Part shown: positions 4,018 through 62,993 of the stretch, in pieces
Layout of the letters: each line of letters begins with the position of its first letter
How positions within the stretch are numbered: position 1 is the stretch's first letter
Virus record (IMG/VR): IMGVR_UViG_3300032242_003291
Location: 186,001 to 250,000 of that record
Length of the DNA stretch: 64,000 nt
Direction: 5' to 3' (one strand)
The notes under the pieces: model-generated
Told to the model about the DNA's origin: nothing
The model's input: only the letters and a program-made list of their open reading frames with translations
Database searches by the model: none
Program-made: the position numbers and the translations under genes

Positions 4018-4731
4018 TTACAAAATATCGTGTAAAAAAGAATTTTTCTTGGTTTCTGATAAATACTCTTTGGTAAATGAAAATGGGTCGTAAGGAATTA
4101 CGTTAAAAACTTTTTTATAATAACAATAAATCCTTTTTGCCGAGTCAAATTCATAAATTTGGTCAAATTTCAAAGGTCTTGTGGTGATAAATCGATTATT
4201 TTCAATTTTTTGACGAATTTTTTCACTATCGATTGAAGAATCCGATTTAATAAAACTTAAATTTTCTAAATCTTCCTTTAAATTTTCCATTCTAATAAAA
4301 TACTCAGGAATTCTACTATCAAAAGTCCATTTTGAAAAAAAATTGTAGTTAATATTATCAGTTTGATTAAATTTTGATAATTCCACTAAAGTTTTTCTTT
4401 TGATAAATGATTCCAATACCCATTCGTTAAACCTTTCTTTTATTTTTTGATAAATTGACTTTTCGATTACCACATCTCCGTATTGAGTTAACAAAAAAAC
4501 AGCAAAAATTCTATCATAAGGGTTCCTAACACTACAAATTAGTTTATAATTCGAGAATTCTTCAGGTATTTGATTAAAATGACTAGTATACCTCTCTTTC
4601 AAAGATATTTCATCATTTGTTTTCGAATTATAAACAAAAAAGTCATAATCGGATAAAATTTCTCTTGTAATTTTTGTACCACACCTTTCAGGTGCCCACC
4701 ATATAACATTATGTTTGTAAGATATGTTCAT
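4018..4731 (-). CDS. sulfotransferase (Sulfotransfer_2-like)
   Basis: PERCGT 5'-PSB-like loop, SVRNPYDR 3'-PB motif, FIRMENLKEDL. Confidence 0.75.
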   Translation of the reverse strand: MNISYKHNVIWWAPERCGTKITREILSDYDFFVYNSKTNDEISLKERYTSHFNQIPEEFSNYKLICSVRNPYDRIFAVFLLTQYGDVVIEKSIYQKIKERFNEWVLESFIKRKTLVELSKFNQTDNINYNFFSKWTFDSRIPEYFIRMENLKEDLENLSFIKSDSSIDSEKIRQKIENNRFITTRPLKFDQIYEFDSAKRIYCYYKKVFNVIPYDPFSFTKEYLSETKKNSFLHDIL

Positions 4732-4767
4732 ACTTTGGAAATATAATCTATTTATAGTAAAAAATAT

Positions 4768-5433
4768 ATGAAAAAATCATTCAAAAAATTTTGGTTACCT
4801 GTATTAGTAGGTTTCAGTCTTTTTATCTTGTCTTTCGTTGGTGCAAAAGCACAAGATGTTGTTGTTTTGAAACACACAAATTACACATCACATTTTAGTA
4901 AATCAAAACACTACCCAGTTATGGTTGAGTGGTGGATTACTAAAGCAAAAGCGGGTTGTGCAAATCAACTTGCAAGAAAAGACAACTTCAAACCTGACCC
5001 TTTATTGTTGAAAGAAACTGATTTAGCGGCAGACTACGTAGGTAGTGGTACTGATAGAGGTCATAATATGCCAGCGGCGGAAAACCAATGTCAGACTGCT
5101 ACAGTTCAAGACGAATGTTTTTACTTCTCAAACATGACACCACAATATCATTCACTAAATGCTGGTGATTGGAAAACATTAGAAGTTTTAGAAAGACAAA
5201 TTGCTAACGATAATGATTCAGTTCACGTTTGGTGTGGAAGTATTGGTGAAGCAAAGAAAATTGGAAAAGTCTCGGTTCCAACTGAATGTTGGAAAGTTAT
5301 TTACGTATTAAAAACTAAAGAATGGATGGCCTATGAGTTTAAGAACACAACTGATAAACCATCAGGGTTAAACTCTCATAAAGTAACTGTTGCAGATATT
5401 ACAAAATTAACAGGATTAAAATTCGTTAAATAA
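4768..5433 (+). CDS. exported DNA/RNA non-specific endonuclease (NucA/Serratia family)
   Basis: Signal peptide; DRGH motif, FYFSNMTPQ, LNAGDWKTLE, VPTECWKV. Confidence 0.9.
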   Translation: MKKSFKKFWLPVLVGFSLFILSFVGAKAQDVVVLKHTNYTSHFSKSKHYPVMVEWWITKAKAGCANQLARKDNFKPDPLLLKETDLAADYVGSGTDRGHNMPAAENQCQTATVQDECFYFSNMTPQYHSLNAGDWKTLEVLERQIANDNDSVHVWCGSIGEAKKIGKVSVPTECWKVIYVLKTKEWMAYEFKNTTDKPSGLNSHKVTVADITKLTGLKFVK

Positions 5434-5646
5434 ATATTTGTTGATATTGTCTATCGTATTCACAGATTCATATCTGTCATAAACAAAGTCCCACAATGTT
5501 TTATTTTTTAAGAACGGGTGGGGCTGTGTTTTAGCCCAAGATTTACCAAGGGAGTAATCCTTGGAACTCCATGTTAATTTTTTAGAAGGTTTTTTTATAA
5601 AAAAACCTTTAATTTTTATTAAAATTTTACACCAAACAGAAGACAT
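5416..5646 (-). CDS. hypothetical protein
   Basis: 76-aa ORF convergent with the nuclease gene. Confidence 0.6.
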   Translation of the reverse strand: MSSVWCKILIKIKGFFIKKPSKKLTWSSKDYSLGKSWAKTQPHPFLKNKTLWDFVYDRYESVNTIDNINKYLFNEF

Positions 5647-5743
5647 ATTAATGTAATTGTACTTATCAGTAGAGCAATGTCAAGTTTACTGATTTTATGT
5701 TTTGTGAGAAACGTTGTTATTATTTTTTTCACATCCATGATAT

Positions 5744-5769
5744 AAAAAACCCCCTATTAGAAGGGGGTT
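5744..5769 (-). terminator. intrinsic terminator
   Basis: aacccc(c)t-loop-agggggtt hairpin with U-tract on the minus strand. Confidence 0.75.
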
Positions 5770-5776
5770 AAATTTT

Positions 5777-6187
5777 TTATTTATTAAAAGAAATATTAAT
5801 TACTGTTGAGTCGTTTAATAAACCCCAATCTAATAATTTTTCATCTGGTCCGTCAGTTTCTAAAGTCACTCTTAACGCAGTTTCAAAAATGTCAGCATCT
5901 AACTTAATGGTGTTTCCTGAAGTTTGTACCCCTCTATTAACATAAACGCCATCGTTTACATTGAACATTAATGATGAATCACAAATACTACCACCATCAC
6001 CTCTTTCATTAGTATAAAAATGGATTTGCTTGTTATCAGTACCTGTCCATTCAATTGTTTTATCTTCAATTGTACTGTTAGGTGCTATCATTGTTTGGTC
6101 GGCAAGTTCAGGTGTATTTACAATACCTGAAATACCATCAACTTTAACAAAAAAGTCTGTGTTATTTCTTAAATTTATTTTTGCCAT
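5777..6187 (-). CDS. hypothetical beta-rich protein
   Basis: 136 aa; TATTTAT at 6203-6209. Confidence 0.75.
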   Translation of the reverse strand: MAKINLRNNTDFFVKVDGISGIVNTPELADQTMIAPNSTIEDKTIEWTGTDNKQIHFYTNERGDGGSICDSSLMFNVNDGVYVNRGVQTSGNTIKLDADIFETALRVTLETDGPDEKLLDWGLLNDSTVINISFNK

Positions 6188-6219
6188 ATTTTTGTTTAAT
6201 TAATAAATATCTACAAATT

Positions 6220-6414
6220 TTATAGATACAGTTTTTGAGTTTCCATTTCCAATCTTTTAGCTTCTCTTTTTAATTGGTCAATTCTTATTTGGTCTTTTGG
6301 AGATACTTCAAAGTTTTCAGCTTGAATTACTCTAATTTGTTCTTGAATTCTTTGGAATTGGAAAAGTAATTTATTATAGGCTTGAGCTTTTTGTTCGTTT
6401 GTAAGTCTTTGCAT
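6220..6414 (-). CDS. hypothetical coiled-coil protein
   Basis: 64-aa helical ORF. Confidence 0.7.
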   Translation of the reverse strand: MQRLTNEQKAQAYNKLLFQFQRIQEQIRVIQAENFEVSPKDQIRIDQLKREAKRLEMETQKLYL

Positions 6415-6455
6415 GATTTTTTCTTTTAATTTAATTAGTAATTCAAAATTGTAAA

Positions 6456-6740
6456 TTACTCTTCGTATTTTATATTCTCAAAATTTTTGTTAATATCATC
6501 CAAATTTTTATCTAGTCTTCCTTGTAATTCTGGATGTAATTTTTTCCCTGTTTTGAACATTGCAAGAAGTTCTTGCAGTTTATCCATTATTTCTTCAACA
6601 GTTTCTTCAACATCTTCGTTACCATTGCTAGTGTCTATTTGCATTGGTTGTGAATAAATATCCAAATCCATAGCAACAGCATTTAAGCCTTGTTCTTGTA
6701 ATTTTTTTAGTTGTAATTCTGTTAAAATATATTTAGCCAT
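6456..6740 (-). CDS. leader-bearing hypothetical protein
   Basis: MAKYILTELQLKKLQEQ. Confidence 0.8.
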   Translation of the reverse strand: MAKYILTELQLKKLQEQGLNAVAMDLDIYSQPMQIDTSNGNEDVEETVEEIMDKLQELLAMFKTGKKLHPELQGRLDKNLDDINKNFENIKYEE

Positions 6741-6749
6741 TTGATATGA

Positions 6750-6761
6750 TATATTTATAAA
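6750..6761. promoter_or_regulatory. palindromic TATTTATAAATA, candidate bidirectional phage-class promoter
   Basis: Sits between divergent genes starting at 6740 and 6777 and gives TATTTAT on both strands. Confidence 0.6.
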
Positions 6762-6776
6762 TATAAAACAATACGT

Positions 6777-7586
6777 ATGAAAAACTTATTTTTGATTTTA
6801 GGAATAATTCCAATCTTGTCATTTGGACAAGTTTCCAATTGGAGAAGTAATCCACCTCAACAACACTCAACACAACAAAGGTCTGTTCCTTCTACACCGA
6901 CACCTTCAAGAAATGATAATGTAAGTTCTTGGAGAGCAACACCTCAACCTCAATCACCTCGAGAAAATAATAGACCAATTATTCGACAAAATAATATACC
7001 GTATCGTTACGGTAATCCTTACTATTACTATGGAACATATGGTTGGTATTATCCATCATATTACTATTGGTATGACCCATATGGATTTAGAAATAGAGGT
7101 CAGGTTTACATTTATGAAAATGGTAAATCAGATACTATCAGAACAACACCGACAAGATTTACTGTTGGTATTCAAAAGTCAAATGACATGTTAGGTGCTT
7201 GGTCAACAATTGGAAATGACGGATTTCTTATTTTAGATTACGTTACAACATACGAACAAGACAAATCCGATTTTTTCCCTTATGGAAAAATAACTCAAGT
7301 TGATTTCCCAATGGTCTCTGACTATGTTCAAAGAAATATATTTTACATAGGTGCTGGTAAAACTTTAGACCACAAATGGAGATTAAGTGCAAGTATTGGA
7401 TTCGGCAATGAAGTTGTTAGATATAGAGGTAAAGACGCAATTGGATACATTACATTTCCAAAATATTCAGGAAATTTTACAACAGTTAAACTTGGATTAA
7501 TTCGTAACTACAAAAAAGTATCTGCTAAGTTTGATTACGACCTAAGTAAAAAATATCTTTCTTTAGGATTAGGTGTAAATTTTTAA
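6777..7586 (+). CDS. exported protein, probable outer-membrane beta-barrel with low-complexity N-terminus
   Basis: Signal peptide, Pro/Gln/Tyr-rich linker, alternating beta strands, terminal LGLGVNF beta-signal. Confidence 0.6.
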   Translation: MKNLFLILGIIPILSFGQVSNWRSNPPQQHSTQQRSVPSTPTPSRNDNVSSWRATPQPQSPRENNRPIIRQNNIPYRYGNPYYYYGTYGWYYPSYYYWYDPYGFRNRGQVYIYENGKSDTIRTTPTRFTVGIQKSNDMLGAWSTIGNDGFLILDYVTTYEQDKSDFFPYGKITQVDFPMVSDYVQRNIFYIGAGKTLDHKWRLSASIGFGNEVVRYRGKDAIGYITFPKYSGNFTTVKLGLIRNYKKVSAKFDYDLSKKYLSLGLGVNF

Positions 7587-7587
7587 G

Positions 7588-7920
7588 ATGATTACAGTTT
7601 CACAAAAAGCACTAAACCACATAATAGAATTAATGATTGAGTCTGACTTAACACCAGACTCTCATCATTTAAGGGTAGGTGTTAAAGGTGGTGGATGTAG
7701 CGGTCTATCTTACGTTATGGAATTTGGTGATGAAGTTGAACCAACAGATGAAATTATTTCTGTCGATGGGGGTTTGAATGTTGTGATTGACCGAAAATCA
7801 GTTTTATATCTTTACGGAACTGAATTAGATTATTCTGATGGACTTAATGGAAAAGGATTTCAATGGATAAATCCAAATGCAAGCCGTGAATGTGGTTGTG
7901 GTTCCTCTTTTGCAATATAA
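7588..7920 (+). CDS. iscA: A-type Fe-S cluster carrier (HesB/IscA/SufA)
   Basis: LRVGVKGGGCSGLSY, GTELDY, NPNASRECGCGSSF. Confidence 0.95.
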   Translation: MITVSQKALNHIIELMIESDLTPDSHHLRVGVKGGGCSGLSYVMEFGDEVEPTDEIISVDGGLNVVIDRKSVLYLYGTELDYSDGLNGKGFQWINPNASRECGCGSSFAI

Positions 7921-7989
7921 GATTACGATTTTACTTTTTTAAGATTAGGATTTTACTATTTTATAAGATATTTATAATAAACATTTTAT

Positions 7990-8568
7990 ATGTGGTTAAA
8001 TAAAATTAAATTAGTTGAAAGTACTTTTATCAAAAAAAACTCAACAGGTAAGTCATTTGAATATAAAAGAAAAAAACAAGTCGCTGAATTAAAATGTGAC
8101 AATTGTGAAAATTTTTTTGACAGAGATATTCACGAATTAGCAACAAATAGAAGAAATAATAATTACAAACATTTTTGTAACGAATGTGATGCAAAAAGTT
8201 TAGGTGGTAAAATGGCTGGTAAAATCAGAAATAAAAAATATGAAGGGGAAATTGGTAAAATAATAAAACCAAAAGGTGGATATTATGAAATTTATGTCAA
8301 AAAAACTCACCAATACAGGCCAGAACAAAATTGGGTTAGACAACACATATTTGTTATGGAAAATAACATCGGTAGAAAATTGTTAGAAGATGAAGTTGTT
8401 CATCATATAGATGGAGATAAATTAAATAATGATATCAAAAATTTAGATGTATGTTCAATATCAGAACACAATAGTTGTCATGCAAAAGCGGAACAAATTG
8501 TTTTTCAATTATACAAAGAAGGTAAAGTTGGATATGATAAAATAAAAAAACTTTATTATATTATCTAA
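7990..8568 (+). CDS. free-standing HNH endonuclease with Zn-binding CxxC pairs
   Basis: VVHHIDGDKLNNDIKNL; CDNC and CNEC; TATTTAT at 7969-7975. Confidence 0.85.
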   Translation: MWLNKIKLVESTFIKKNSTGKSFEYKRKKQVAELKCDNCENFFDRDIHELATNRRNNNYKHFCNECDAKSLGGKMAGKIRNKKYEGEIGKIIKPKGGYYEIYVKKTHQYRPEQNWVRQHIFVMENNIGRKLLEDEVVHHIDGDKLNNDIKNLDVCSISEHNSCHAKAEQIVFQLYKEGKVGYDKIKKLYYII

Positions 8569-8593
8569 TCTAATCAATTAGTATTTATAATAG

Positions 8594-9691
8594 ATGAATT
8601 TAAGAGAAAAAATATCAAAACTTATAAAAGAAGCATTAGGTATACCTGAAAACATTTATGAAACATCTGTTGATGTATACAATGAAGTCTTGAAACAACT
8701 TGACCAACCTCCTCATATAAAACGTGATGATGACGAAGTCAAATTATATTTTATGATTGAAAAGGGTTTGAGAATTTCGGATTTCTTATTACCAAGAATT
8801 TTAATGGAATTTACAATTCATGTTGATGAAGATTACAATGAATTTGAATTAGTTAGTATGAATGTTCAAAGTGAGACGGAAAGACCAACTGAAGACAACC
8901 CATCAAAACTCAAAAAGACAGAAGTTGAAGATTTGATTATAAATTCGGTATTTGTTGGTCCTGAGACTTTTGTTCTTGAAAATTTCAAAAATTTTTTAGT
9001 TTCAATCAAAAGTGAATTTGTATCTAGTGTTTCTCACGAATTGAAACACGCATATGACCACACCAAAGGGGAGTACGAATCAGTAGAATATAGAGCGGGT
9101 TATAATGCAATAGCAGGTAAGAAATTTAACATCAATTGTGTTGACCTATTTTTTCATGACTTGTATTATGTAATGGCTAGTGAAAATTTAGTTAGACCAA
9201 CAGAAATTGCATCTGCAATCAGAGAAAATAAAATCAGTCAAAAAGACTTTTTGAAGTTTTTAACTAATAGTACAACATATCAAAATCTAAAAAGAATCTC
9301 ACAATTCACATTAGAAGGTTTCAAAGATTGTTTAAGAAAAGAAATGAAATCAGTGGATAAATTCTTTTACCACGTAGGTGGTGGTGAAGGATTGAGTGAA
9401 GAAGAAAAAGTTAGTAAGATTATAGAATTAGTTTACATCAATTTGGTCAATTGGAAAATAGATGCTTTTAGAGAAATATTAACCTCAGAATTTATCGAGG
9501 AAATTTTAGGGTTCAGAGGTCAAAAAAAGAAAACACTCGATAACTTTATCAAAAAAACTTTGAGATTTGAAAAAAACCCTGAAGACTTTTTTAGATATGA
9601 AGAAAAGAATTTTAGGGATGTGGGAAACAAAATGATTAGAAAGATATCCAAACTACACTCTATCACTCATCCAAAATCCGTCGATAGTTAA
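8594..9691 (+). CDS. HExxH zincin-like protein
   Basis: VSHELKHAYD and downstream RPTE; N-terminal LIKE; TATTTAT at 8582-8588. Confidence 0.6.
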   Translation: MNLREKISKLIKEALGIPENIYETSVDVYNEVLKQLDQPPHIKRDDDEVKLYFMIEKGLRISDFLLPRILMEFTIHVDEDYNEFELVSMNVQSETERPTEDNPSKLKKTEVEDLIINSVFVGPETFVLENFKNFLVSIKSEFVSSVSHELKHAYDHTKGEYESVEYRAGYNAIAGKKFNINCVDLFFHDLYYVMASENLVRPTEIASAIRENKISQKDFLKFLTNSTTYQNLKRISQFTLEGFKDCLRKEMKSVDKFFYHVGGGEGLSEEEKVSKIIELVYINLVNWKIDAFREILTSEFIEEILGFRGQKKKTLDNFIKKTLRFEKNPEDFFRYEEKNFRDVGNKMIRKISKLHSITHPKSVDS

Positions 9692-10117
9692 ACTTTTACT
9701 TCCACATTTATTCAAACAATCTAAATAGTGTTTAACTATTAAATAACTAAAACCATGTCGGTCCTTCAGTGACCAATAATGTTTTGTGTCATTTATAATT
9801 CCTTCGATATAATATTCATAGTTTGTATTTCTACGCTGAATATTTTTTATCATAAGATAAGGATGTTTTCCAATCCAAGATTTCAAATAAATTTGATACT
9901 CATAATATTTTAATGTGAATACGTTAAAAAATTGATTAAAATATTTTTGATTATACCAAATATCTCCAGTACAAATTATTTCAAAATACCATTCTTTAGT
10001 ATCCAAATCAAGTAACCAAATAGAACGACCAACAGGATAGAATATCTTTCCACCTAATTCATCTGACAATCTTTGGAATATAATTTTTTTTAATCTTTCG
10101 TTTGCAGAGTCCACCAT
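9653..10117 (-). CDS. hypothetical protein (WF paralog family)
   Basis: FNVF...YLKSWIGKH motif. Confidence 0.7.
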   Translation of the reverse strand: MVDSANERLKKIIFQRLSDELGGKIFYPVGRSIWLLDLDTKEWYFEIICTGDIWYNQKYFNQFFNVFTLKYYEYQIYLKSWIGKHPYLMIKNIQRRNTNYEYYIEGIINDTKHYWSLKDRHGFSYLIVKHYLDCLNKCGSKSLTIDGFWMSDRV

Positions 10118-10139
10118 TTTAGAAATATAGTAAATTTCC

Positions 10140-10466
10140 TTAGTGTTTCCAAGTTGTAATTATATTACCATCGGGTCCCCACACAATAAAATTCATAATC
10201 GGCTTATTAATGTCAAAATACGGGAAGTACTGTTTGATATGATATTCAACCAAATAGTGTGGGTCAAAATCCTTATCATACATGTTTTCTTTGGTTATGG
10301 TCGGGTCATTTACAAATATATCAACTTCCAATCCTCCCCACCCTCTTGGGTTATATAAATCTGAATTATAACGAATATCGATATGGTCAACCATAGGATA
10401 AATATTTTTGATTGTACCTGAGTTGGCTAATTTCTCTAATCCTTTTACTTGAAAATCTTTAATCAT
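10140..10466 (-). CDS. hypothetical protein
   Basis: 108 aa in a tightly packed operon. Confidence 0.75.
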   Translation of the reverse strand: MIKDFQVKGLEKLANSGTIKNIYPMVDHIDIRYNSDLYNPRGWGGLEVDIFVNDPTITKENMYDKDFDPHYLVEYHIKQYFPYFDINKPIMNFIVWGPDGNIITTWKH

Positions 10467-10467
10467 G

Positions 10468-10842
10468 TTATTCTATGGTTTTCACAGGTAATTTGAAATT
10501 ATCAGTAAACCATTTCTTGAATGGTTCGTGCCATTTATCACCAAAATATCCATCTAATTTAATGTCGTATGGATGCTCAAGTTGTACTATTGGACAAAGT
10601 TCTTTAGCTTTACTTCCATCATCAAAATATTCACAACCATACCACATAAAACATCCATCTTCATCTCCATTATAATCTCCAATATAAAATAAAATTCTAC
10701 TTTCGTCATCACCTTCTTCACCTGTTTCATCATCTATTATGTCATAGGGATTGGTCCAATTAATATCATCAACATCAAATATATCATCGAGATATGTCAT
10801 GATTACACTTTCTAATTTGGACTCTGTGATTACGTATCTCAT
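10468..10842 (-). CDS. leader-bearing WF-family protein
   Basis: MRYVITESKL; LDGYFG...FKKWFTDNFKLPVK. Confidence 0.8.
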   Translation of the reverse strand: MRYVITESKLESVIMTYLDDIFDVDDINWTNPYDIIDDETGEEGDDESRILFYIGDYNGDEDGCFMWYGCEYFDDGSKAKELCPIVQLEHPYDIKLDGYFGDKWHEPFKKWFTDNFKLPVKTIE

Positions 10843-11441
10843 TATTTATTTTGACTTTTAATCTTTTCTAATGCTTTATTAACTTTCATCCACTGTTTTT
10901 CTCTTTCGGCTCTTTCAAGGTCTTTCTTTTCTTCTCTTTTTCTCCAATTGGCAAAACTATCAGGATTCATTTTTTCTCTTGCTATACGAATCAAATCATC
11001 CTTATTTTGTAATTTTGTTTCAATATCGGCAGTTCTTTTCTTAAACCCTTGTAAATCAAAATCAGGTTCTAATTTATCTTGACGTGTTGCGTGGTGGGGT
11101 TTTCTAACTTTTGCAGGTAAATCTCTTTCTTCACCATGTAATTTTTTGAATTTAATTCCGTACTTAGCAACTCCACTCTTTCCACCAAATTTATCAAAAA
11201 TCCATTTTGTAACATCTTCTCTTAAATCCTTGTCGGAACTAAAAAACAAATTGTCCTTTAATTCATTGAACGCATCCAAAGAAACAATACCACTTGTAGG
11301 TCCTAATTGAGCCATAAGTTTACCATTAACATAAATGTTTCTATGGTCTCCCTCATGTTTAATCTCATAACCATTAAACATATCTTCTAACATAGAAGAC
11401 ATCAATTCGTTGGCTTGTTGTTCTGTTATTATAATTTTCAT
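10842..11441 (-). CDS. leader-bearing WF-family protein with charged tail
   Basis: MKIIITEQQ; VTKWIFDKFG. Confidence 0.8.
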   Translation of the reverse strand: MKIIITEQQANELMSSMLEDMFNGYEIKHEGDHRNIYVNGKLMAQLGPTSGIVSLDAFNELKDNLFFSSDKDLREDVTKWIFDKFGGKSGVAKYGIKFKKLHGEERDLPAKVRKPHHATRQDKLEPDFDLQGFKKRTADIETKLQNKDDLIRIAREKMNPDSFANWRKREEKKDLERAEREKQWMKVNKALEKIKSQNK

Positions 11442-41898: not shown

Positions 41899-42522
41899 AT
41901 GAAATCTTGGTTTGTTAACATTTCTGAACAATATAAATATTTTACATGGACCCCTGAAAGAACGGGTTCAACTCATTTTACTAATGTAATATCAAAACTT
42001 GGTTTTAAGTCTGCAGATGTTGTTGATTATAAAATTGTTTCATACGTAGATAATGTTCGTCATAATCATTTTTGTTCTCTTTTTGAAAACCATTGGGATT
42101 ATAAATTAATAATAACAACTAGGAATCCTTACTCAATGGTTATATCAAGGTCAGGTGCGTCTTCACTCAATAATATATCTGATGTTCAATCTGAAATAGA
42201 ATTAAGAATTGAAAATATGATGCAAAATCCCGTTGACAGTCCTTTTTGTTGTCAATGCTTTCAAGATAGAAAACCTGATTATTTCTTGAGGTTGGAAAAT
42301 TTATATGAGGATTGGCTCAAAATACCATTTGTTCAAACACATGAATTTAATCTTTCAGGTGAATTAAAAAAATTAACATCAATCAGGTTGAATGAACAAA
42401 AAAATACTGAAAACATTAATTATTGGAAAAAATATTACAACAAAAGGATTGCTGATTTAGTTTACTATAATTTCCCAAACAATTTCGAATTATTTGGATA
42501 TGATAAAGATTCTTGGAAATAA
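41899..42522 (+). CDS. sulfotransferase (Sulfotransfer_2-like)
   Basis: PERTGS, TTRNPYS, YFLRLENLYED. Confidence 0.75.
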   Translation: MKSWFVNISEQYKYFTWTPERTGSTHFTNVISKLGFKSADVVDYKIVSYVDNVRHNHFCSLFENHWDYKLIITTRNPYSMVISRSGASSLNNISDVQSEIELRIENMMQNPVDSPFCCQCFQDRKPDYFLRLENLYEDWLKIPFVQTHEFNLSGELKKLTSIRLNEQKNTENINYWKKYYNKRIADLVYYNFPNNFELFGYDKDSWK

Positions 42523-42965: not shown

Positions 42966-43369
42966 TATTTTTCTCCGTACATTAATTCTTCATATTTGAA
43001 AAAATCTTTTTCAAATGATTTAATAAAAATACTAGCCAATACGTTAGCCATATTTTCTTCAGGTCCACCAATATCTTTTATTGGTTGGTCGTCTCTTAAT
43101 CCCATTTTTTGATGTTGATATTCATGTACCCATTCATGTGCAATTGTTTTGAGAACATCGATTAATAGACGATGTGCAGATAAAACATATATTTCATGAT
43201 TAGGAAGTCTAACTCCTGTAGTCATTGGCTCAACTCTTTTTTCTAAAAATGTAAAAGTGACATCCTCAGTAAGTTGTAGTTTGGTTTGAATAAATTTAAT
43301 AAAATCTTTAATCACTTTTATTTCGTCAGGATTAAATAACTTTTTGGTATTTTTAAGACAGACTCTCAT
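42965..43369 (-). CDS. small HExxH metallopeptidase-like protein
   Basis: TIAHEWVHEYQH...GPEENMAN. Confidence 0.7.
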   Translation of the reverse strand: MRVCLKNTKKLFNPDEIKVIKDFIKFIQTKLQLTEDVTFTFLEKRVEPMTTGVRLPNHEIYVLSAHRLLIDVLKTIAHEWVHEYQHQKMGLRDDQPIKDIGGPEENMANVLASIFIKSFEKDFFKYEELMYGEK

Positions 43370-44474
43370 GATTATAAATATCTGTAATCATTTTTAATGC
43401 CTGAGCAATTATTTGATGCATGTCGTAATACACATATGTTGCCAATCTGCCACCAAATATAACGTTTTTAAGACCCTTAGTTAGTTCGTGATACCTATTA
43501 TAGACCTGAGTGTTTTTATCGTCTCTAATTGGGTAATATGGTTCGTTATGACCATCGTATTCTTCAGGGAACTCGTAACTTATGATTGTACCTTTTTGAC
43601 CTTGATAGTCAAACCATTTATGTTCTAATATTCTGGTAAAAAGAGTTGTGGAATCTGTATAATTAACCACAGGATTACCTTGGAAATTACCTTCATCTAT
43701 CGTAACATTGGTCCAACTCAAACTTCTGTAATCTAACTTACCAAACTGATAATCAAAATATCTGTCTATCGGTCCTGTATATATTATTTTCTCTGCAAGA
43801 TTGTCATAATATTCACGGTTATCGAAATAATCTTGACCTAAAGAAACATCAATACCTTCTAACATTTTTTCAAATATTTGAGTATATCCACCTATAGGTA
43901 TTCCAGTATATTTGTCATTAAAGTAATTACTATCCCACGTGAATCTTATAGGTAATCTTTTAATAATTGATGCTGGTAATTCACTACAGGGTCTACCCCA
44001 TTGTTTAGTGGTATAGCCATTGATAAGTTTTTCGTAAATATCATCACCAACAATTGACCTTGCTTGTTCTTCGAGATTTTTAACTTCGCCTTTATACCTT
44101 TGTTTTTTGATGATTTCTTTTGCATCTTCTTCGGTTTTAACACCCCACAGTTGGTTAAAGGTCCACATGTTGAATGGGAGTGTGAACATTTCTCCGTTGT
44201 AATTCGCAATAACATTATGACTATATTGTTTAAATTCAGCAAATTGATTTATGTAATCCCAAATATATTTTTCATTAGTGTGGAATATATGTGCCCCGTA
44301 TCTGTGAACATGAATACCATTAACATTTTCAGTGTAACAATTTCCTCCAAGAGTGTTTCTTTTATCAATGACTAAACAAGATTTACCTCTCTTAGTAAGT
44401 TCATAAGCACAAACGGAACCATAAGGTCCCGCTCCTATTATGAGGTAATCATATTTTTTATCGATTAAAATCAT
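43353..44474 (-). CDS. glf: UDP-galactopyranose mutase
   Basis: IIGAG, GGNC, HRYGAHIFH, YTGPID, TRILEHK, EPYYP, GRLATYVYYDMHQ. Confidence 0.97.
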   Translation of the reverse strand: MILIDKKYDYLIIGAGPYGSVCAYELTKRGKSCLVIDKRNTLGGNCYTENVNGIHVHRYGAHIFHTNEKYIWDYINQFAEFKQYSHNVIANYNGEMFTLPFNMWTFNQLWGVKTEEDAKEIIKKQRYKGEVKNLEEQARSIVGDDIYEKLINGYTTKQWGRPCSELPASIIKRLPIRFTWDSNYFNDKYTGIPIGGYTQIFEKMLEGIDVSLGQDYFDNREYYDNLAEKIIYTGPIDRYFDYQFGKLDYRSLSWTNVTIDEGNFQGNPVVNYTDSTTLFTRILEHKWFDYQGQKGTIISYEFPEEYDGHNEPYYPIRDDKNTQVYNRYHELTKGLKNVIFGGRLATYVYYDMHQIIAQALKMITDIYNHESLS

Positions 44475-45628
44475 TTGAAATCAAATTTAATTGAATCTAA
44501 ATTAATTGAAAATTCTCCAACCTTTTTTTCTATTTTGTTTTTCCAATCAACAAGATGGTTGCTTGAATTGTAATAAGCTCTATCTTCAATAAGGAACGCA
44601 AGTGTTGGGAATGGATTAACTCTTTCAGGTTGTAACATTTTTTTAAAATGAGGAATCATTTCTTCTAACTTTCCTTTTCTTTCTAAATGTTCACACAAAT
44701 AGAGTAAATGTTCATTTCTTTGTGGTTGGAATTGTTCAGCCAATAAATAATGTTCTTCAGCAGATTTATTGTCTCCAATAAAACTATGTGCATGTCCCAT
44801 CGTACAAAGAGCAAAATAACACATTTCATCTTCATGTTTAGCAGTCTTAGAGTTAGACCAATCATGAGTTAATTCTAAAAATCTTTCATAGTACCATATT
44901 GAACGTCTAGCATATTCATCGGAATGTTTTTTACCAAAGGGTAGTTCACTTGGATTACCATAACAATCAGCATAACTTTTGGCAATATACCATAAATGAT
45001 AATAGTCTTCCAAAACTTTATTTCCAACAACCTTATCTTTCTCTAATTCCAACGCATCATTTAGAAATTTTCTTGGTACGTGCCAAGTTTCACCATCTTG
45101 TGATACCTTGTGTCTAAACCCCCATGGCATTCCAACTCTTTGAAACCCTTCTCCGATTTCAGGTAAATGAATTGTCTCGTGTCTTTTATCATGTTGGAAA
45201 AACCAAGGTAATTTAGCATTCCAAAGCCATGTTCTAAAATATTTGGTATCACCAGCTTCAGCACCAATATTGAAACTTTGTATTGATGTGTTATCAAATA
45301 TAGACCAATCAAAATCTTCATCAACATGAAGTCTTTCATCAGCATCCATTCTTAAAATCCAATCACATCCATGTAAAGTTTTAAGTGCTTCTTGCAGGGT
45401 ATGGTCTCTGTTAAATCCAGGAAAGTTCCATTCAGTAAAATAAGTAAATCCTGGTATTTTTTTTTCTTCAAAGAAATTATCAATAACTTCTTTTGTGTTA
45501 TCTTCGGTTCCATTACATTGGATTACATAATAATCTATATATGGTGCAACTGACTCCAACATTCTTGTAATGGTCTTAGACTCATTGCCGACCATAGCAT
45601 TCAAACAAATTTTTGTTTTTTTATTCAT
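44471..45628 (-). CDS. glycosyltransferase family 2 with helical/TPR-like C-terminus
   Basis: CLNAMVGNE, NRDHTL, WILRMDADE, RHETIH. Confidence 0.85.
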   Translation of the reverse strand: MNKKTKICLNAMVGNESKTITRMLESVAPYIDYYVIQCNGTEDNTKEVIDNFFEEKKIPGFTYFTEWNFPGFNRDHTLQEALKTLHGCDWILRMDADERLHVDEDFDWSIFDNTSIQSFNIGAEAGDTKYFRTWLWNAKLPWFFQHDKRHETIHLPEIGEGFQRVGMPWGFRHKVSQDGETWHVPRKFLNDALELEKDKVVGNKVLEDYYHLWYIAKSYADCYGNPSELPFGKKHSDEYARRSIWYYERFLELTHDWSNSKTAKHEDEMCYFALCTMGHAHSFIGDNKSAEEHYLLAEQFQPQRNEHLLYLCEHLERKGKLEEMIPHFKKMLQPERVNPFPTLAFLIEDRAYYNSSNHLVDWKNKIEKKVGEFSINLDSIKFDFK

Positions 45629-46868
45629 AAATGTAATTCATAACTTGTTCTTCTTTGAAGAACTTTTTAACGGGTTGATGATTCTGAAATTTATGAGAAT
45701 GTTCTCTTTCTTCATCCCAACACCAATCTTCAAATCCTAATTCTTGGATTCTTTTATGTATTGCCTTGTCATAATAATCTCTTATCAATCTGGCTCTTCT
45801 GTTTATATCTTGTGCATTATTATCAACTGTACTATTTCTATTGTTATATTGTAAGTATAACATTCGTTTTACGTGAATAAACCTTGTATGTAAAAAACTC
45901 TTAACAATCATTTCAAAATCATCAGCAACGGGGGTATTTTTGTTATGTCCACCGATTTTGTGGTAAAGATTTCTTTCCCACATTCTAACGTGGTCTGGCA
46001 TTGAAATATTGAATCTTATTGTTAAAGGATTTATATCAGGGTACCAATGAGCTAAATAATCTTTACCGTCAGCGTTAACCCATGTATGACCAGCATATCC
46101 AAAATCAAAATAGTTATCATGTCTTCCGTACCAATTACCTGACCAATCGTGGTCATATGTTTTCATTTCTCCATCATCATATAATTCACAAACATCGCTA
46201 TATAAAAATCCTGCATCAGGATGTTTTAAAATTGCGTCATTACATATCTCAAGACACTTATTTACAAATTTATCATCGTGGTCTAACTCAACCAACCAAT
46301 CGCCATCACATAACATTGCCGCCCTATGTTTAGCAAGTCCGACATTACCACCTGATACTGGTAATATTTTATGTATTTTTACCCTATAATCATTTTTAGA
46401 TATATCTTGGATAATATTCCATGTCTCATCATCAGGTGAATCATCAACAATAACCCATTCCCAATTTGTCCACGTTTGATTAACCAAACCTTGATAGGTT
46501 CTTTTAATTCTTTCTCCTGTTTGATATGTTGGAGTAAAAATTGAGAATCTCGGTCTGTTGACTTTAGTATGTCTAAAAACTGTTTGACACACTATAACAT
46601 TTGCCAACACATTATCGCCCAACATCTCATCATAATGAATGTGCATTTGTCTCAATTGGTGATGAGGAATTTCGATTAGTTCATTAAAAGATATAATTAA
46701 ATCAGGTTGATAATTTGTATAATCACCGACAACATCATTGTTATAAGGTAAAGAATAGACAACAACGTCGTCAAACAAAGATTCTTCAAAATAAACATCA
46801 GAAACTAAAGTTATTTCTCCTTTGATTTCTAGTCCATAAACAATTGCGCTTGGTTTTTTTGTCTTCAT
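45621..46868 (-). CDS. glycosyltransferase family 2 (C-terminal domain)
   Basis: FSIFTPTY, WVIVDDS, ELDHDD, VADD. Confidence 0.9.
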   Translation of the reverse strand: MKTKKPSAIVYGLEIKGEITLVSDVYFEESLFDDVVVYSLPYNNDVVGDYTNYQPDLIISFNELIEIPHHQLRQMHIHYDEMLGDNVLANVIVCQTVFRHTKVNRPRFSIFTPTYQTGERIKRTYQGLVNQTWTNWEWVIVDDSPDDETWNIIQDISKNDYRVKIHKILPVSGGNVGLAKHRAAMLCDGDWLVELDHDDKFVNKCLEICNDAILKHPDAGFLYSDVCELYDDGEMKTYDHDWSGNWYGRHDNYFDFGYAGHTWVNADGKDYLAHWYPDINPLTIRFNISMPDHVRMWERNLYHKIGGHNKNTPVADDFEMIVKSFLHTRFIHVKRMLYLQYNNRNSTVDNNAQDINRRARLIRDYYDKAIHKRIQELGFEDWCWDEEREHSHKFQNHQPVKKFFKEEQVMNYIYE

Positions 46869-53337: not shown

Positions 53338-54003
53338 ATGAACAATTTTTTTTTATTTTCTGAAAAACATGAGTCTTTTGTATGGCTTCCATCGAGAACA
53401 GGAAGTAATCATTCATTTAGTATTCTAAAGTCTTTCGAGTTTGAAAATTATACATATTCAAAAAAAACTAATATGTTGGAACGTTCAAATACTTTTGGTT
53501 ATGGGCATTCACTTAATCGATTTCCAAACGATGAAAATTATTGTTTGATAAGTACCGCAAGGCATCCATATACAAGATTGGTTTCTTTTTTCAAGATTTC
53601 AAGATGTTTCAAATATAAAAATAGTTATTCAATAAATTATACGATGGATGAACCTCTGAACGAAAGAAAATTAAAATTCAAAAATTTTTTAGATGGTATA
53701 TTAAATAATCCATCTATAATTCATCCTGCACTTAGAAGTTATACTTTAGATAGAATTCCTAACTTTTTTTTAAGGGTTGAAAATTTGTATGAAGACTATA
53801 TTAAAATTCCCTTCATATCATCAAGTGAATTTAATTTGAGTGGTGAATTAGAAAAAAAATGTTTAATAAAAGAAAACCCAAACAAAATCGATTTGACTCC
53901 TTGGCGAGAATATTTTGACCAATCAGTCGCAGATTTGATTTACAGTAAAACTGAACAATATTGTAACTTATTAGGTTATGAAAGGGATATTTGGAAGAAT
54001 TAA
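53338..54003 (+). CDS. sulfotransferase (Sulfotransfer_2-like)
   Basis: PSRTGS, TARHPYTR, FLRVENLYED. Confidence 0.75.
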   Translation: MNNFFLFSEKHESFVWLPSRTGSNHSFSILKSFEFENYTYSKKTNMLERSNTFGYGHSLNRFPNDENYCLISTARHPYTRLVSFFKISRCFKYKNSYSINYTMDEPLNERKLKFKNFLDGILNNPSIIHPALRSYTLDRIPNFFLRVENLYEDYIKIPFISSSEFNLSGELEKKCLIKENPNKIDLTPWREYFDQSVADLIYSKTEQYCNLLGYERDIWKN

Positions 54004-56837: not shown

Positions 56838-56893
56838 TCTTTTTTTAAAAATAGGGAACCTCGATTTTACGACCATAGTCAACCCATTCTTAG

Positions 56894-56965
56894 TTGCGAG
56901 GGATGGATTCGAACCACCGACCTAAAGGTTATGAGCCTTCCGAGCTACCTCTGCTCTACCTCACG
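56894..56965 (-). tRNA. tRNA-Met(CAT), initiator type
   Basis: Cloverleaf with CAT anticodon, TTCGAAT T-loop, C1:A72 mismatch, A11:U24; no encoded CCA. Confidence 0.92.
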
Positions 56966-61058: not shown

Positions 61059-61059
61059 A

Positions 61060-61911
61060 TTATAAACCTAATTCTAATTGTTTGTTCAAATCAACAAAAT
61101 GTTGTACTCTTTCTTTTGCAATTTTGGTATAAGCATCACTTAATTCAATCCCAATCCACCTTCTGTTCCATATTTCAGCAGCACAAATACTTGTACCTGA
61201 ACCTGTAAATGGGTCTAACACAATATCATTTTTATATGATAGTATTTTGATGGCTTTGACTGGAATATCCATTGAGAATGTTGCCTTAGTCAATTGCTTG
61301 GTATCTGCAAAGTAATCCCATTGACCATAAACTAAATCCATAAATTCTTTCTTATCATCTTCTTGATATACATTTTTCTTTTTTACTGCACCGTCCTCCT
61401 GCTCGACGTCAATAATTTGTCCTTTCCATTGAGGTTCACCTTTAATTTTCTTAATGTGTGTTTTTTTGTAAGCCAACAATACACATTCTTTTGGATTATA
61501 TATGTATGGTGCCGATGGTGACATCCAAGAACCCCACGCTGTGGTTTTACTCCTATGTGGAGATTCTTCTTCCAAATCAACTATACCATAAAACTTATAA
61601 CCAATGTTTTTCATAATCTGCCAAAGTTCTGATACCATTAAAATTCTCCCACCTTTATCCTGTCTGTTAATTTCATAAGGAATGTTTAGGGCTATCCTCC
61701 CATCATCTTTCAATACTCTGTACGCCTCTCTTAACCAATTAGCACTGAAAACTTTGTATTGTTCAAATTCTATATCATCATCAAATGTATCATATTTGAT
61801 TCCAACACCGTAAGGTGGTGATGTTACGATTAGGTCTACGGAAGACTCAGGCATTTTTGCCATGACTTCAATACAATCCCCATTAATTACTTTACCTATA
61901 TAATCTTCCAT
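61060..61911 (-). CDS. orphan beta-class amino DNA methyltransferase (SPPY, likely N4-cytosine)
   Basis: DLIVTSPPY (motif IV) before VLDPFTGSGT (motif I); start re-assigned. Confidence 0.9.
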   Translation of the reverse strand: MEDYIGKVINGDCIEVMAKMPESSVDLIVTSPPYGVGIKYDTFDDDIEFEQYKVFSANWLREAYRVLKDDGRIALNIPYEINRQDKGGRILMVSELWQIMKNIGYKFYGIVDLEEESPHRSKTTAWGSWMSPSAPYIYNPKECVLLAYKKTHIKKIKGEPQWKGQIIDVEQEDGAVKKKNVYQEDDKKEFMDLVYGQWDYFADTKQLTKATFSMDIPVKAIKILSYKNDIVLDPFTGSGTSICAAEIWNRRWIGIELSDAYTKIAKERVQHFVDLNKQLELGL

Positions 61912-61916
61912 TATTT

Positions 61917-62150
61917 TTATTTTACTATTACTACGTCGCCCTTCCAAATGACTTCATTTGCCTGACAACTCATATGATGTTTATCCACTCGTTCACCTCT
62001 TTTATTATCCCAAACTAAATCTCTTGTGGTGTGTAAAGGTATCTCAACTATTACGTTAGATGCTGTCCATTCTACGCCATCAATTAGAATTCTCCAAAAC
62101 ATGTGATTATCTTCACACAAGGTATTCCATCTTATTTTAACGTCTATCAT
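61917..62150 (-). CDS. hypothetical protein
   Basis: 77 aa, operonic. Confidence 0.7.
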   Translation of the reverse strand: MIDVKIRWNTLCEDNHMFWRILIDGVEWTASNVIVEIPLHTTRDLVWDNKRGERVDKHHMSCQANEVIWKGDVVIVK

Positions 62151-62548
62151 AACTTACCTTCTTGCTTTAGTTGTTCTCTGATTTTGGTTGCGGAGATTTC
62201 ACTAACTTCTTGTGGTGGTATATGTTCGATAACATCATAACCGACTCCCCTTCCGAAATTAACTGACTCTATATCTGGGATTTTAATAACTTCAACCCTT
62301 CCTTCACTGATTAAATCCAACAATTCAACAGTTATGTTTGAATGAACTTGATTGGCTGTGAAAGGATTTTTTTCATCAGGTTCAACATCCCTAATACAAA
62401 TTAAAACATTTTTTCCTTGTTCTAATCTTTGGTCTATTAACCATCTATGACCTGCGTGCCATGGCTGCCATCTTCCAATAAACATTGAATATTGTTTACC
62501 GACGCTGTTTTTTAATTTTGGGTCTCCCTCTACGTGTATTTTTTCCAT
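62147..62548 (-). CDS. small HxGH nucleotidyltransferase (cytidylyltransferase/NadM-like)
   Basis: FIGRWQPWHAGH, KNPF, ISATKIR. Confidence 0.85.
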   Translation of the reverse strand: MEKIHVEGDPKLKNSVGKQYSMFIGRWQPWHAGHRWLIDQRLEQGKNVLICIRDVEPDEKNPFTANQVHSNITVELLDLISEGRVEVIKIPDIESVNFGRGVGYDVIEHIPPQEVSEISATKIREQLKQEGKL

Positions 62549-62549
62549 A

Positions 62550-62993
62550 TTAATATTCGTACGCCAGAATTGTTCTAGCACATTCTTGAACCGTTTTATT
62601 ATCAGTATTGATATCTACGAAAAGCTCAGTTGGAGCTTCATAGTTTTCTACAAAGAAATTTTCACGTCCTCTCACCTCTGTTGTATGAACGTAAAATTCA
62701 ACAAGATTATCTCCCATTTTTTTCTTGAAGTTCTCTCTTTGGTCTTTATACGGTGAAACTAACGACACAATAACATTATGTCCTTTAGATACTAGATATT
62801 GTGAAAGTTGTTGAGCCAACTCGATATTCTTTCTTCTACCTTGTTCCGAATAATCTTTATTATCAAATAATTCTCTGATGTCATCACCATCAACATTGAA
62901 TGAATTTTGAGTTAAAAGATTATTACAAATGTATTTTGCAATTGTAGTTTTTCCTGCTCCAGGTTGTCCTGTTAGCCAATAAATTTTAGCCAT
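62550..62993 (-). CDS. cysC: adenylyl-sulfate (APS) kinase
   Basis: WLTGQPGAGKTT, VDGDDIR, GRRKNI, VSLVSPY, YEAP. Confidence 0.9.
   Translation of the reverse strand: MAKIYWLTGQPGAGKTTIAKYICNNLLTQNSFNVDGDDIRELFDNKDYSEQGRRKNIELAQQLSQYLVSKGHNVIVSLVSPYKDQRENFKKKMGDNLVEFYVHTTEVRGRENFFVENYEAPTELFVDINTDNKTVQECARTILAYEY

Follow-up and report, generated by a model that had tools for sequence, protein, structure and literature searches.

Two types of enzyme are established for the activation of sulfate to APS: the homo-oligomeric ATP sulfurylase (Sat, PF01747), which has a catalytic domain of about 210 aa plus a PUA-like domain and is also found fused with APS kinase (bacterial Sat-CysC, animal PAPS synthase); and the heterodimeric CysDN (and NodPQ, RaxPQ), which acts with CysC and in which CysD is a PP-loop ATP pyrophosphatase coupled to the GTPase CysN. 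Dedicated PAPS supplies for sulfotransferases, such as NodPQ-NodH and RaxPQ-RaxST, are the established precedent, and viruses carry auxiliary sulfur genes (cysC, cysH and others) as well as glycan-modifying enzymes. We analysed a 64,000-nucleotide stretch (the window; positions 186,001 to 250,000 of IMG/VR record IMGVR_UViG_3300032242_003291) of a freshwater phage genome, in which a CysC-like APS kinase, sulfotransferase-like genes and a small HxGH nucleotidyltransferase (NTase) are encoded. It resembles the known cases in being a phage with host-like sulfur-metabolism and glycan genes; it differs from them in that a complete activation-plus-transfer route (activator, kinase and several transferases) appears to be encoded, with a candidate first enzyme for which our full-text literature searches found no description.

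Components of the candidate sulfation module

An earlier note, made from the sequence alone, had pointed out three dispersed Sulfotransfer_2-like paralogs, an APS kinase and, directly downstream of it, a ~133-aa HxGH NTase, with no Sat or CysDN in the window. This observation holds: all five genes are where the note placed them (Table 1). The window lies in a genome of 317,259 bp, rated 100% complete by CheckV, and no Sat (PF01747), CysD/CysH (PF01507) or Nampt was found in the window or anywhere in this genome. The presence of a canonical sat elsewhere in the genome had been named in advance as an outcome that would count against the idea; neither sat nor cysDN is there.

Table 1. Features of the module and associated genes (window coordinates, except the last two rows, which are positions in the complete phage genome)
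Feature	Position	Strand	Length
APS kinase (CysC-like, short lid)	62550..62993	-	147 aa
HxGH nucleotidyltransferase, candidate minimal sulfate adenylyltransferase	62147..62548	-	133 aa
ORF, possible accessory gene of the module	61917..62150	-	77 aa
Predicted sulfotransferase-fold paralog 1	4018..4731	-	237 aa
Predicted sulfotransferase-fold paralog 2, next to the glycan genes	41899..42522	+	207 aa
Predicted sulfotransferase-fold paralog 3	53338..54003	+	221 aa
UDP-galactopyranose mutase plus two GT2 glycosyltransferases (likely makers of the glycan acceptor; inferred)	43353..46868	-	
Sulfotransferase-fold paralog elsewhere in the genome	136308-136934		
Sulfotransferase-fold paralog elsewhere in the genome	137268-137864		

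The kinase matches Pfam APS_kinase at 4.7e-19 (69.4 bits, gathering score 21.1), and its best PDB matches are all APS kinases, with GQPGAGKTT (the P-loop), VDGDDIR (DGDxxR), GRRKN (within S-x3-R-x2-N, the Arg/Asn of the APS site) and VSPY aligned; but it scores only 80.6 bits against the TIGR00455 equivalog cut-off of 138.7, and its mobile lid is about 25 residues shorter, so that neither the model matches nor the motifs settle whether it is a full CysC. The same short type is the only APS-kinase-like gene in a closed 0.97-Mb bacterial chromosome (G005) that also encodes Sulfotransfer_5. The NTase ORF can be read from a GTG (62147-62581), but its thousands of relatives are 133 aa long, so the real start is the ATG one base after the kinase stop (TAATATG). 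Stops and starts overlap or are 1 nt apart from a DUF3310 gene through the 77-aa ORF (the start of the neighboring DNA methylase gene is less certain).

The sulfotransferase-like genes are real paralogs (BLASTP 3e-8 to 5e-32, the latter between paralogs 2 and 3), and five are present in the genome. Pfam support is only sub-threshold: paralog 3 matches Sulfotransfer_2 at E 0.003 (18.2 bits against 22), the other two in the window have no Pfam match, and paralog 1 matches phrog_3347 (Gal-3-O-sulfotransferase) at 1.4e-4; thus "Sulfotransfer_2-like" describes the fold and motifs, not a Pfam-threshold match. An AF2 model of paralog 3 (pLDDT 82) gave PAPS sulfotransferases as all of its top 25 matches (VIA) among 48,161 PDB representatives (Z 9.3-5.3; HS 3-OST 9.3 over 190 aa, 2-OST 8.6, NDST 8.5), followed by P-loop kinases at Z 5 or less, and the top Foldseek hits were also sulfotransferases. 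Two motifs define this family, the 5'-phosphosulfate loop and the 3'-phosphate R-x7-S; the 5'-PSB-like PxRTGS and R-x7-S motifs are conserved here, with P18, xRTGS and R75...S83 invariant or nearly so across 14 family members, paralog 1 carries PERCGT and RNPYDR-x3-S-type motifs, and paralog 2 has the shared motifs. Paralog 2 lies 3 bases from the operon that contains Glf (GLF, 2e-76) and two GT2 genes, one matching Glycos_transf_2 at 2.8e-18 and the other weakly (4.9e-4).

A nucleotidyltransferase family linked to CysC

The NTase matches CTP_transf_like at 5e-6, and its AF2 model (pLDDT 90) has an HxGH nucleotidyltransferase fold. By sequence and structure its nearest solved relatives are archaeal NMNAT (1f9a, Z 10.8) and PPAT (Z 10.4), ahead of the ATP sulfurylase catalytic domains (Z 6-8 over about 115 residues; for example, 1v47, Z 8.1). 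It is not an ordinary NMNAT, however. The N-terminal 75 residues resemble NadM-type and archaeal NMNAT in GRxQPxHxGH and NPFT, and the GRFQPxHxGH ATP site and the ISxTxIR helix are present, as FIGRWQPWHAGH and ISATKIR; but the scores are far below the NCBIfam cut-offs (37.4 bits against 127 for NF002243, and 33.2 against 181 for TIGR01527), and phmmer and Foldseek alignments to NMNATs end near residue 106 or superpose only about 80 residues at 2.2-2.6 A. The roughly 45-residue NMN-side segment is replaced by a 22-residue loop (a segment about 23 residues shorter) with its own invariant GRxVGY motif. An identity as an NMN transferase had been set out beforehand as a possible refutation, and this replacement of the NMN-binding half speaks against it.

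The NTase is not a member of the Sat family either. There is no PF01747 hit; HAGH is preceded by GRWQP instead of QxRNP; there is no GRDHAG loop, and a different invariant loop, NYGRxVGY, follows strand 3. Comparison (hhalign) of our family alignment with eight Sat domains gives only a local, out-of-register match (85% probability, E 6e-6) driven by the xxIxxRD and ISxTxxR stretches, although both belong to the HxxH superfamily, share an (I/L)S(A/G)TxxR C-terminal motif, and are fused to or adjacent to APS kinase in both orders. By sequence the protein descends from the NadM/NMNAT branch rather than from Sat; with CysD it shares neither fold nor GTP coupling.

It belongs instead to a distinct family with the signature GR(W/F)QPxHxGH, VRD, NPFT, NYGRxVGY and ISATxIR. 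The window protein carries every invariant and near-invariant residue (G25, R26, H31, G33, H34, R53, N61, P62, D92, G99, R100, V102, G103, Y104, S119, T121 and R124). An exhaustive search found 1,194 representatives, many of which are single proteins with the NTase joined to a full-length APS kinase that passes the TIGR00455 cut-off (for example, protein P0170, 257 bits against 138.7), in both orders, kinase-NTase and NTase-kinase. In 80 loci from GTDB species genomes (Marinimicrobia, Bacteroidota, Acidobacteriota, Patescibacteria, Poseidoniales and others), 70 have an APS kinase, and in 66 it is immediately upstream or fused; the same holds for 69 of 79 viral loci, and the adjacency is conserved across many phyla and hundreds of viral contigs. 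Three Marinoscillum loci have the NTase with no adjacent kinase.

The family sits in polysaccharide loci, where neighbors include Sulfotransfer_5 (19 loci), Sulfotransfer_1/3, a CysQ-like Inositol_P gene, Wzx, Wzi, Wza-like exporters, Wzz, ABC-2 exporters and glycosyltransferases. Co-occurrence of the NTase, cysC and sulfotransferases, which the earlier note had proposed to examine, was also seen in viruses: the sulfotransferase family occurs together with the module in 7 of 10 large related viral records, including both complete ones, which carry six paralogs each. In Nitrospiraceae the gene order is Rrf2, sulfite reductase, APS reductase (CC...CxxC...ECGLH, the Fe-S type that uses APS directly), then the NTase, with no kinase; that is, the NTase is in the slot where an ATP sulfurylase would be expected.

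The distribution of the family complements that of Sat and CysD among genomes with an APS kinase. In Marinimicrobia, 91 of 95 kinase genomes without the NTase have Sat or CysD, against 0 of 4 carriers in the sample and 0 of 12 carriers overall (Fisher 2e-5 and 7e-13); in Flavobacteriales it is 45 of 45 against 0 of 2 in the sample and 0 of 8 carriers overall (9e-4 and 1e-9), and there CysD normally sits next to cysC, in the position that the NTase holds in carriers. Over these two phylum-level samples, 136 of 140 APS-kinase genomes without the NTase have Sat or CysD, and none of the 20 Marinimicrobia and Bacteroidota carriers does. These tests are not corrected for phylogeny, and most carrier genomes are MAGs or SAGs. 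The closed chromosome G005 has the kinase, the NTase and Sulfotransfer_5 and no Sat, CysD or CysN, and a closed 4.5-Mb chromosome (G031) lacks Sat, CysD, CysH and sulfite reductase. Among 50 carrier genomes, Sat occurs in 5 and CysD in about 6, so in about 11 of them, including the Nitrospiraceae, the NTase is not the only candidate.

Proposed sulfation route and alternative readings

The earlier note inferred that the small NTase next to cysC could make APS, completing a PAPS supply for sulfating virion glycans or the host surface, and our analysis supports this interpretation through five independent kinds of comparative evidence: the fusions, the conserved adjacency, the sulfotransferase, CysQ-like and capsule gene neighbors, the Nitrospiraceae operon and the complementary distribution. 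In our preferred reading, which is strong genomic inference without biochemistry and to which we give a probability of roughly 0.7, the NTase acts as a minimal sulfate adenylyltransferase (ATP + sulfate -> APS + PPi), using the HxGH/ISxTxxR chemistry common to this superfamily; the translationally coupled kinase would phosphorylate APS at once to PAPS, pulling the unfavourable first step; and the five sulfotransferase-fold paralogs would then move sulfate from PAPS to acceptors, most likely phage-made or phage-modified glycans (Glf, GT2 and carbamoyltransferase genes lie nearby), with PAP disposal left to the host. The genes, their families and folds (the latter from predicted models), the operon structure, the family-wide linkage and the complementary distribution come directly from our data, whereas the sulfurylase activity, for which there is no enzymatic evidence, roles for the conserved Arg26, Arg53 and Arg100 in binding sulfate or PPi, and the identity of the acceptor (virion glycan, host surface or something else) are inferences from genomics. 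It seems somewhat more likely than not that the protein represents a third, previously unrecognised class of sulfate adenylyltransferase, a minimal offshoot of the NadM-type nucleotidyltransferases that replaces Sat or CysDN in jumbo and other phages and in streamlined or non-assimilating bacteria and archaea of at least eight phyla.

Two alternatives are unlikely, and about equally so. In the first, the host supplies APS, the kinase alone completes PAPS synthesis, and the NTase activates some other phosphorylated or anionic compound for glycan synthesis (for example, a CDP/ADP-alditol or sugar, TagD/HldC-like), or works with the kinase on an adenylylated substrate other than APS. Many bacteria do make APS, many of the loci are polysaccharide loci, and minimal HxGH enzymes such as TagD, HldC and Fom1 CyTase are structural neighbors (Z 6-7.6); but this does not explain the fusions to equivalog-grade CysC in both orders, the place after APS reductase and sulfite reductase in Nitrospiraceae, or the loss of Sat/CysD precisely in carriers that keep CysC and sulfotransferases, and carriers such as G005 have no known way to make APS.

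In the second, the pair does make APS and PAPS, but mainly as an auxiliary metabolic module that boosts host sulfur assimilation during infection, and the sulfotransferase-like paralogs are unrelated to it or are not sulfotransferases. Fused kinase-NTase genes occur in cultured Xylella, Xanthomonas and Stenotrophomonas phages among early and DNA-metabolism genes, with no sulfotransferase among the annotated neighbors shown (for example, Sano and DLP_6); in the window the module sits between the DUF3310 gene and the DNA methylase, not beside the sulfotransferase-like genes, whose Pfam hits are sub-threshold. However, the phage has no CysH or sulfite reductase of its own, its five paralogs have intact PAPS-binding motifs, the two gene families co-occur in related viruses, and in cells the module is typically in sulfotransferase loci.

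The least likely reading, that the NTase is an NMN (or NaMN) adenylyltransferase for NAD salvage or counter-defence whose place next to the kinase has nothing to do with sulfate, rests on its best PDB and NCBIfam hits and on JGI annotations that often call it NMNAT, but is opposed by the low scores and replaced NMN side, by the absence of Nampt from the phage, by the ties to CysC and sulfur metabolism, and by source names for it that disagree (NMNAT, PPAT, FAD synthase, cytidyltransferase).

Other genes may belong to the module. A small DUF2061 membrane protein, with which the NTase may work, is fused or adjacent to it in several lineages. In the phage, the start of the 77-aa ORF overlaps the NTase stop (ATGA); it has no Pfam or PHROG match and its link to the module is weak, but a homologue lies between the kinase and the NTase in one other locus (L047; tblastn 5e-9).

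Proposed sulfation genes in the phage genome

The window is bases 186,001-250,000 of a 317,259-bp IMG/VR virus record that was rated complete by CheckV. The GC content is about 31%, and two near-identical complete relatives exist, of 321 kb (with terminal repeats) and 317 kb. A DNA search of the phage collection found only two short hits, to Pelagibacter phages, and the host was not identified; sequencing runs that contain the module come from freshwater and lake metagenomes in 17 studies. All five genes named in the earlier note (three sulfotransferase (ST)-like genes, an APS kinase, and a small HxGH nucleotidyltransferase, or NTase) are real ORFs at the places it gave, so its observation holds. 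The coordinates of the features discussed here are listed in the table.

Features of the phage genome and of related loci (G000, the complete phage genome; L-numbers, loci retrieved from other genomes or records, or excerpts of G000)
Sequence	Feature	Coordinates	Strand
Window	DNA/RNA non-specific endonuclease, beside ST 4018	4768-5433	+
Window	2-kb bin of 41% GC	32001-34000	
Window	UDP-galactopyranose mutase (Glf) and two GT2 glycosyltransferases, one operon next to ST 41899	43353-46868	-
Window	SPFH/Band 7 protein, beside ST 53338	54000-54545	-
Window	tRNA-Met (CAT)	56893-56965	-
Window	N6/N4 DNA methylase, flanking the module	61060-61947	-
Window	NTase	62147-62548	
Window	APS kinase	62550-62993	-
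Window	DUF3310 protein, flanking the module	62986-63216	-
G000	129-aa ORF beside the DUF2061 gene	128487-128876	
G000	DUF2061 membrane protein (L178:1821-2228)	128821-129228	
G000	ST-fold paralog (L089:6308-6934)	136308-136934	-
G000	ST-fold paralog (L089:7268-7864)	137268-137864	-
L089 (G000 130001-144000)	NodU/CmcH-type carbamoyltransferase	11367-13040	+
L006	DUF2061 protein	9034-9261	
L003 (Xylella phage Sano)	gp35, kinase-NTase fusion	4584-5321	
L004 (Stenotrophomonas phage DLP_6)	gp227, kinase-NTase fusion	3590-4321	
L056	Kinase-NTase pair among methyl-cycle genes	4954-9615	
L053	Kinase-NTase pair among methyl-cycle genes	5921-14770	
L066	Kinase-NTase pair among methyl-cycle genes	7413-15858	
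L058, L061, L067 (Nitrospiraceae)	Operon ending in the NTase	about 4200-8441	
L030, L033, L035 (Marinoscillum SAGs)	NTase without adjacent kinase	7551-8336	

The three ST-like proteins are paralogs (BLASTP 3e-8 to 5e-32), and the genome holds two more outside the window. Profile searches of the ST-like proteins with Pfam and NCBIfam gave nothing above threshold (the best was Sulfotransfer_2 at E 0.003, below the cut-off), while PHROGs gave Gal-3-O-sulfotransferase at 1.4e-4 for one of them; we therefore turned to a fold search. An AF2 model (pLDDT 82) was compared with 48,161 PDB representatives, and its 25 best matches are all PAPS sulfotransferases (heparan sulfate 3-O, 2-O, N and 6-O sulfotransferases, SULTs, TPST, StaL and Stf), with Z from 9.3 down to 5.3, followed by unrelated P-loop kinases at Z 5 or less; Foldseek agrees, with weak E-values. 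In addition, an alignment of 14 family members keeps a PxRTGS loop and an R-x7-S motif (R75, S83), which are the PAPS 5′-phosphosulfate and 3′-phosphate binding elements of sulfotransferases. We therefore accept these proteins as sulfotransferases by predicted fold and motifs, though not by Pfam threshold.

The kinase matches APS_kinase (4.7e-19), its best PDB matches are exclusively APS kinases, and the P-loop, DGDxxR, the Arg/Asn of the APS site and the (I/V)SPY motif all align. It scores below the CysC equivalog cut-off (80.6 against 138.7 bits) because the lid is about 25 residues shorter. However, the same short form (150-158 aa) is the partner of the NTase in Marinimicrobia, and it is the only APS-kinase-like gene in the closed chromosome G005 (a carrier from that phylum), which also encodes Sulfotransfer_5; the short form is therefore very probably functional.

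The long ORF of the NTase starts at a GTG, but the 120 listed best of at least 8,000 metagenomic relatives (80-94% identical) are nearly all 133 aa, so the start is the ATG at 62548. The upstream DUF3310 gene, the kinase, the NTase and a 77-aa ORF are joined by overlapping or 1-nt-spaced stops and starts, which suggests one translationally coupled operon. An N6/N4 DNA methylase follows, the longest ORF of which, from a TTG, overlaps the 77-aa ORF by about 30 nt (this junction was not examined). A predicted complex of the kinase and the NTase returned no answer (score 0.01), which is not evidence either way.

Pfam detects only CTP_transf_like (5e-6) in the NTase, and NCBIfam NMNAT models score 33-37 bits against cut-offs of 127-181. 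The first 75 or so residues resemble archaeal NMNAT (GRxQPxHxGH, NPFT), after which the alignment stops. The AF2 model (pLDDT 90) is a minimal HxGH fold, of which only about 80 residues superpose tightly on NMNAT or PPAT in Foldseek; in an exhaustive VIA structure search, NMNAT scores Z 10.8, PPAT 10.4, and Thermus ATP sulfurylase 8.1 over 115 residues. Structure therefore fixes the superfamily, which includes Sat, but not the substrate. Profile-profile comparison (hhalign) of the NTase family against Sat domains gave only an out-of-register local match, so it could not map a sulfate site.

The NTase family in cells and viruses

An exhaustive phmmer search found 1,194 representatives of the family, 519 of them at E 1e-10 or better. 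Among the 20 long representatives that we scanned, most are fusions with APS kinase, in both orders, and the kinase halves of five of them pass the CysC equivalog cut-off (138.7 bits) by a wide margin: P0170 at 257 bits, P0243 at 217, P0241 at 202, P0191 at 184 and P0147 at 183. Other members are fused to DUF2061, a small membrane domain, or to DUF6717. The family alignment defines a signature that NMNATs lack, in addition to GRxQPxHxGH and ISATxIR: Arg53 is near-invariant in a VRD motif after strand 2, and in a loop after strand 3 Gly99 and Tyr104 are invariant, and Arg100, Val102 and Gly103 near-invariant. The cultured Xylella, Xanthomonas and Stenotrophomonas phages Sano, Salvo, Bacata, Seregon and DLP_6 carry kinase-NTase fusions; we checked the signature in Sano gp35 and DLP_6 gp227. 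These fusions (243-245 aa) are annotated only as “kinase” or hypothetical, and they sit among early and DNA-metabolism genes (MazG, a “cysteine dioxygenase”, topoisomerase; ligase, Fe(II) oxygenase).

A scan of GTDB species representatives with an alignment of eight sequences confirmed 198 loci. The best 80 come from Marinimicrobia/SAR406 (60-71% identical to the phage protein), marine and freshwater Bacteroidota, Poseidoniales and other archaea, Acidobacteriota, Nitrospiraceae, Patescibacteria and others, and many lie on contigs of 0.1-4.5 Mb. An APS kinase is present in 70 of the 80 loci; it is immediately upstream or fused in 66, and fused in 12. In Marinimicrobia the module lies inside capsule loci, next to Sulfotransfer_5 (7.8e-48) and with Wzi, a Wza-like exporter, GT4, epimerases and aminotransferases. 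In Flavobacteriales the order is kinase, NTase, other genes, a CysQ-like Inositol_P gene, a Wzx flippase, then two or three Sulfotransfer_1/3 genes. The module also lies between an ABC-2 exporter and a GT4 in a Patescibacteria MAG, next to Wzz/GNVR in a Pelagibacteraceae-binned contig, and next to a weak Sulfotransfer_3 match in a closed Pyrinomonadaceae chromosome. In three Marinoscillum loci the NTase has no adjacent kinase; we asked if the upstream 138-aa gene is a divergent kinase, but it has no P-loop, so it is not.

In Nitrospiraceae the NTase likewise has no kinase. Instead, the operon runs Rrf2 regulator, sulfite reductase (NIR_SIR, fused to HEPN and TusA domains), a PAPS_reduct protein, and then directly the NTase. 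The PAPS_reduct protein carries the ECCRIRK, SIGCAPCT and KECGLH motifs, which mark the Fe-S APS reductases that take APS directly, and the step missing from that operon is ATP sulfurylase. These genomes also hold a 580-aa canonical Sat elsewhere, so they have two candidate sulfurylases.

Among viruses, more than 570 IMG/VR stretches encode the family, and the kinase is immediately upstream in 69 of 79 loci. The ST family is present in 7 of 10 large related records, with six paralogs in both complete genomes. The phage has no CysQ, so PAP removal would fall to the host.

Distribution of Sat and CysD, and interpretation

Of 50 carrier genomes, 5 have Sat and about 6 have CysD. G005, a closed 969,550-bp chromosome, has no Sat, CysD or CysN, only EF-Tu-like GTPases and one borderline PP-loop hit; G031, a closed 4.5-Mb chromosome, lacks CysH and sulfite reductase too, like four other carriers. 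In these organisms the APS kinase can only serve sulfation, and they have no known source of APS. In an even sample of 151 genomes from the phylum of G005 (at least 80% complete), 99 have a strong APS kinase: of the 95 without the NTase, 91 have Sat and/or CysD, whereas none of the 4 with it has either (Fisher 1.9e-5); with all 12 Marinimicrobia carriers the result is 0 of 12 (7e-13). In 91 Flavobacteriales-order genomes (at least 90% complete), 47 have an APS kinase: all 45 without the NTase have CysD, usually right beside cysC, and the 2 with the NTase have none (9e-4); with the 8 Bacteroidota carriers the result is 0 of 8 (1e-9). These tests ignore phylogeny and lean on MAGs, but the pattern nevertheless repeats in two phyla and in closed genomes.

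The simplest account of these data is that the small NTase makes APS from ATP and sulfate, and we put a probability of about 0.7 on this function; we are more confident still of the weaker claim that the NTase works with APS kinase in APS/PAPS metabolism. The central proposal of the earlier note, that this NTase could complete a PAPS supply, is thus supported. In this view the kinase, co-translated or fused, would pull the unfavorable reaction by making PAPS, which in the phage would feed five sulfotransferases that probably act on glycans. The fusions, the gene order and the complementary distribution are observed, whereas the sulfurylase activity is inferred from them, and roles for Arg26, Arg53 and Arg100 in binding sulfate or PPi are inference only; it was not examined if the three residues cluster in the model.

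Alternatively, the NTase may be a true NMNAT, it may activate another substrate while the APS is made by the host, or the module may serve host assimilation rather than the STs. NAD reconstitution by the phage was considered and rejected, as there is no Nampt in the phage and the family context is sulfur; likewise, CoA synthesis (PPAT plus dephospho-CoA kinase logic) was rejected because the kinases of fused members are equivalog-grade CysC.

Only two enzyme types are known for sulfate activation, a textbook step. A third type, of 110-170 residues, would fill a pathway hole in abundant aquatic microbes that have an APS kinase and sulfotransferases but no known sulfurylase (SAR406/Marinimicrobia, marine Flavobacteriales, Poseidoniales and some Acidobacteriota); those genomes could then be re-annotated, and sulfated polysaccharide production would be predictable from them. 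It would also provide a very small enzyme for PAPS regeneration in biotechnology. For phage biology, it would show a virus carrying a complete sulfate-to-sulfate-ester route, which implies sulfated virion or host-surface glycans. The reaction and the superfamily are known, but the enzyme family and a phage-encoded complete sulfation route appear to be new: full-text literature searches found no description of either, although the literature searched was incomplete and this does not prove novelty. Pfam and NCBIfam have no specific model for the family, and source annotations disagree (NMNAT, PPAT, FAD synthase, cytidyltransferase).

Associated and neighboring genes

A small DUF2061 membrane protein is genetically tied to the NTase. 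It is fused to it in the representative P0169, adjacent to it in a phage contig carrying P0170, and adjacent in several MAG loci (it is found in L006, and just downstream of the NTase in L013, L028, L046 and L047). The phage encodes one too, 120 kb from the module, beside a 129-aa ORF that travels with it. The protein could be a membrane anchor or a sulfate-uptake partner.

Of the five phage sulfotransferases, ST 41899 lies beside the operon of UDP-galactopyranose mutase (2e-76) and two GT2 genes, and the phage appears to make a galactofuranose-containing glycan. The two paralogs outside the window flank a DUF6915 gene and lie 3.5 kb from the NodU/CmcH-type carbamoyltransferase, with ClpP, a nitroreductase and HNH endonucleases nearby.

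In Poseidoniales (MGII/III) archaea and some marine Bacteroidota, the kinase-NTase pair is not in polysaccharide loci but is embedded, for reasons that are unexplained, among methyl-cycle genes: AdoHcy hydrolase, SAM synthetase, SHMT and homocysteine S-methyltransferase. The window itself has a single tRNA, and one 2-kb bin has an unexplained GC content of 41%, against about 31% elsewhere.
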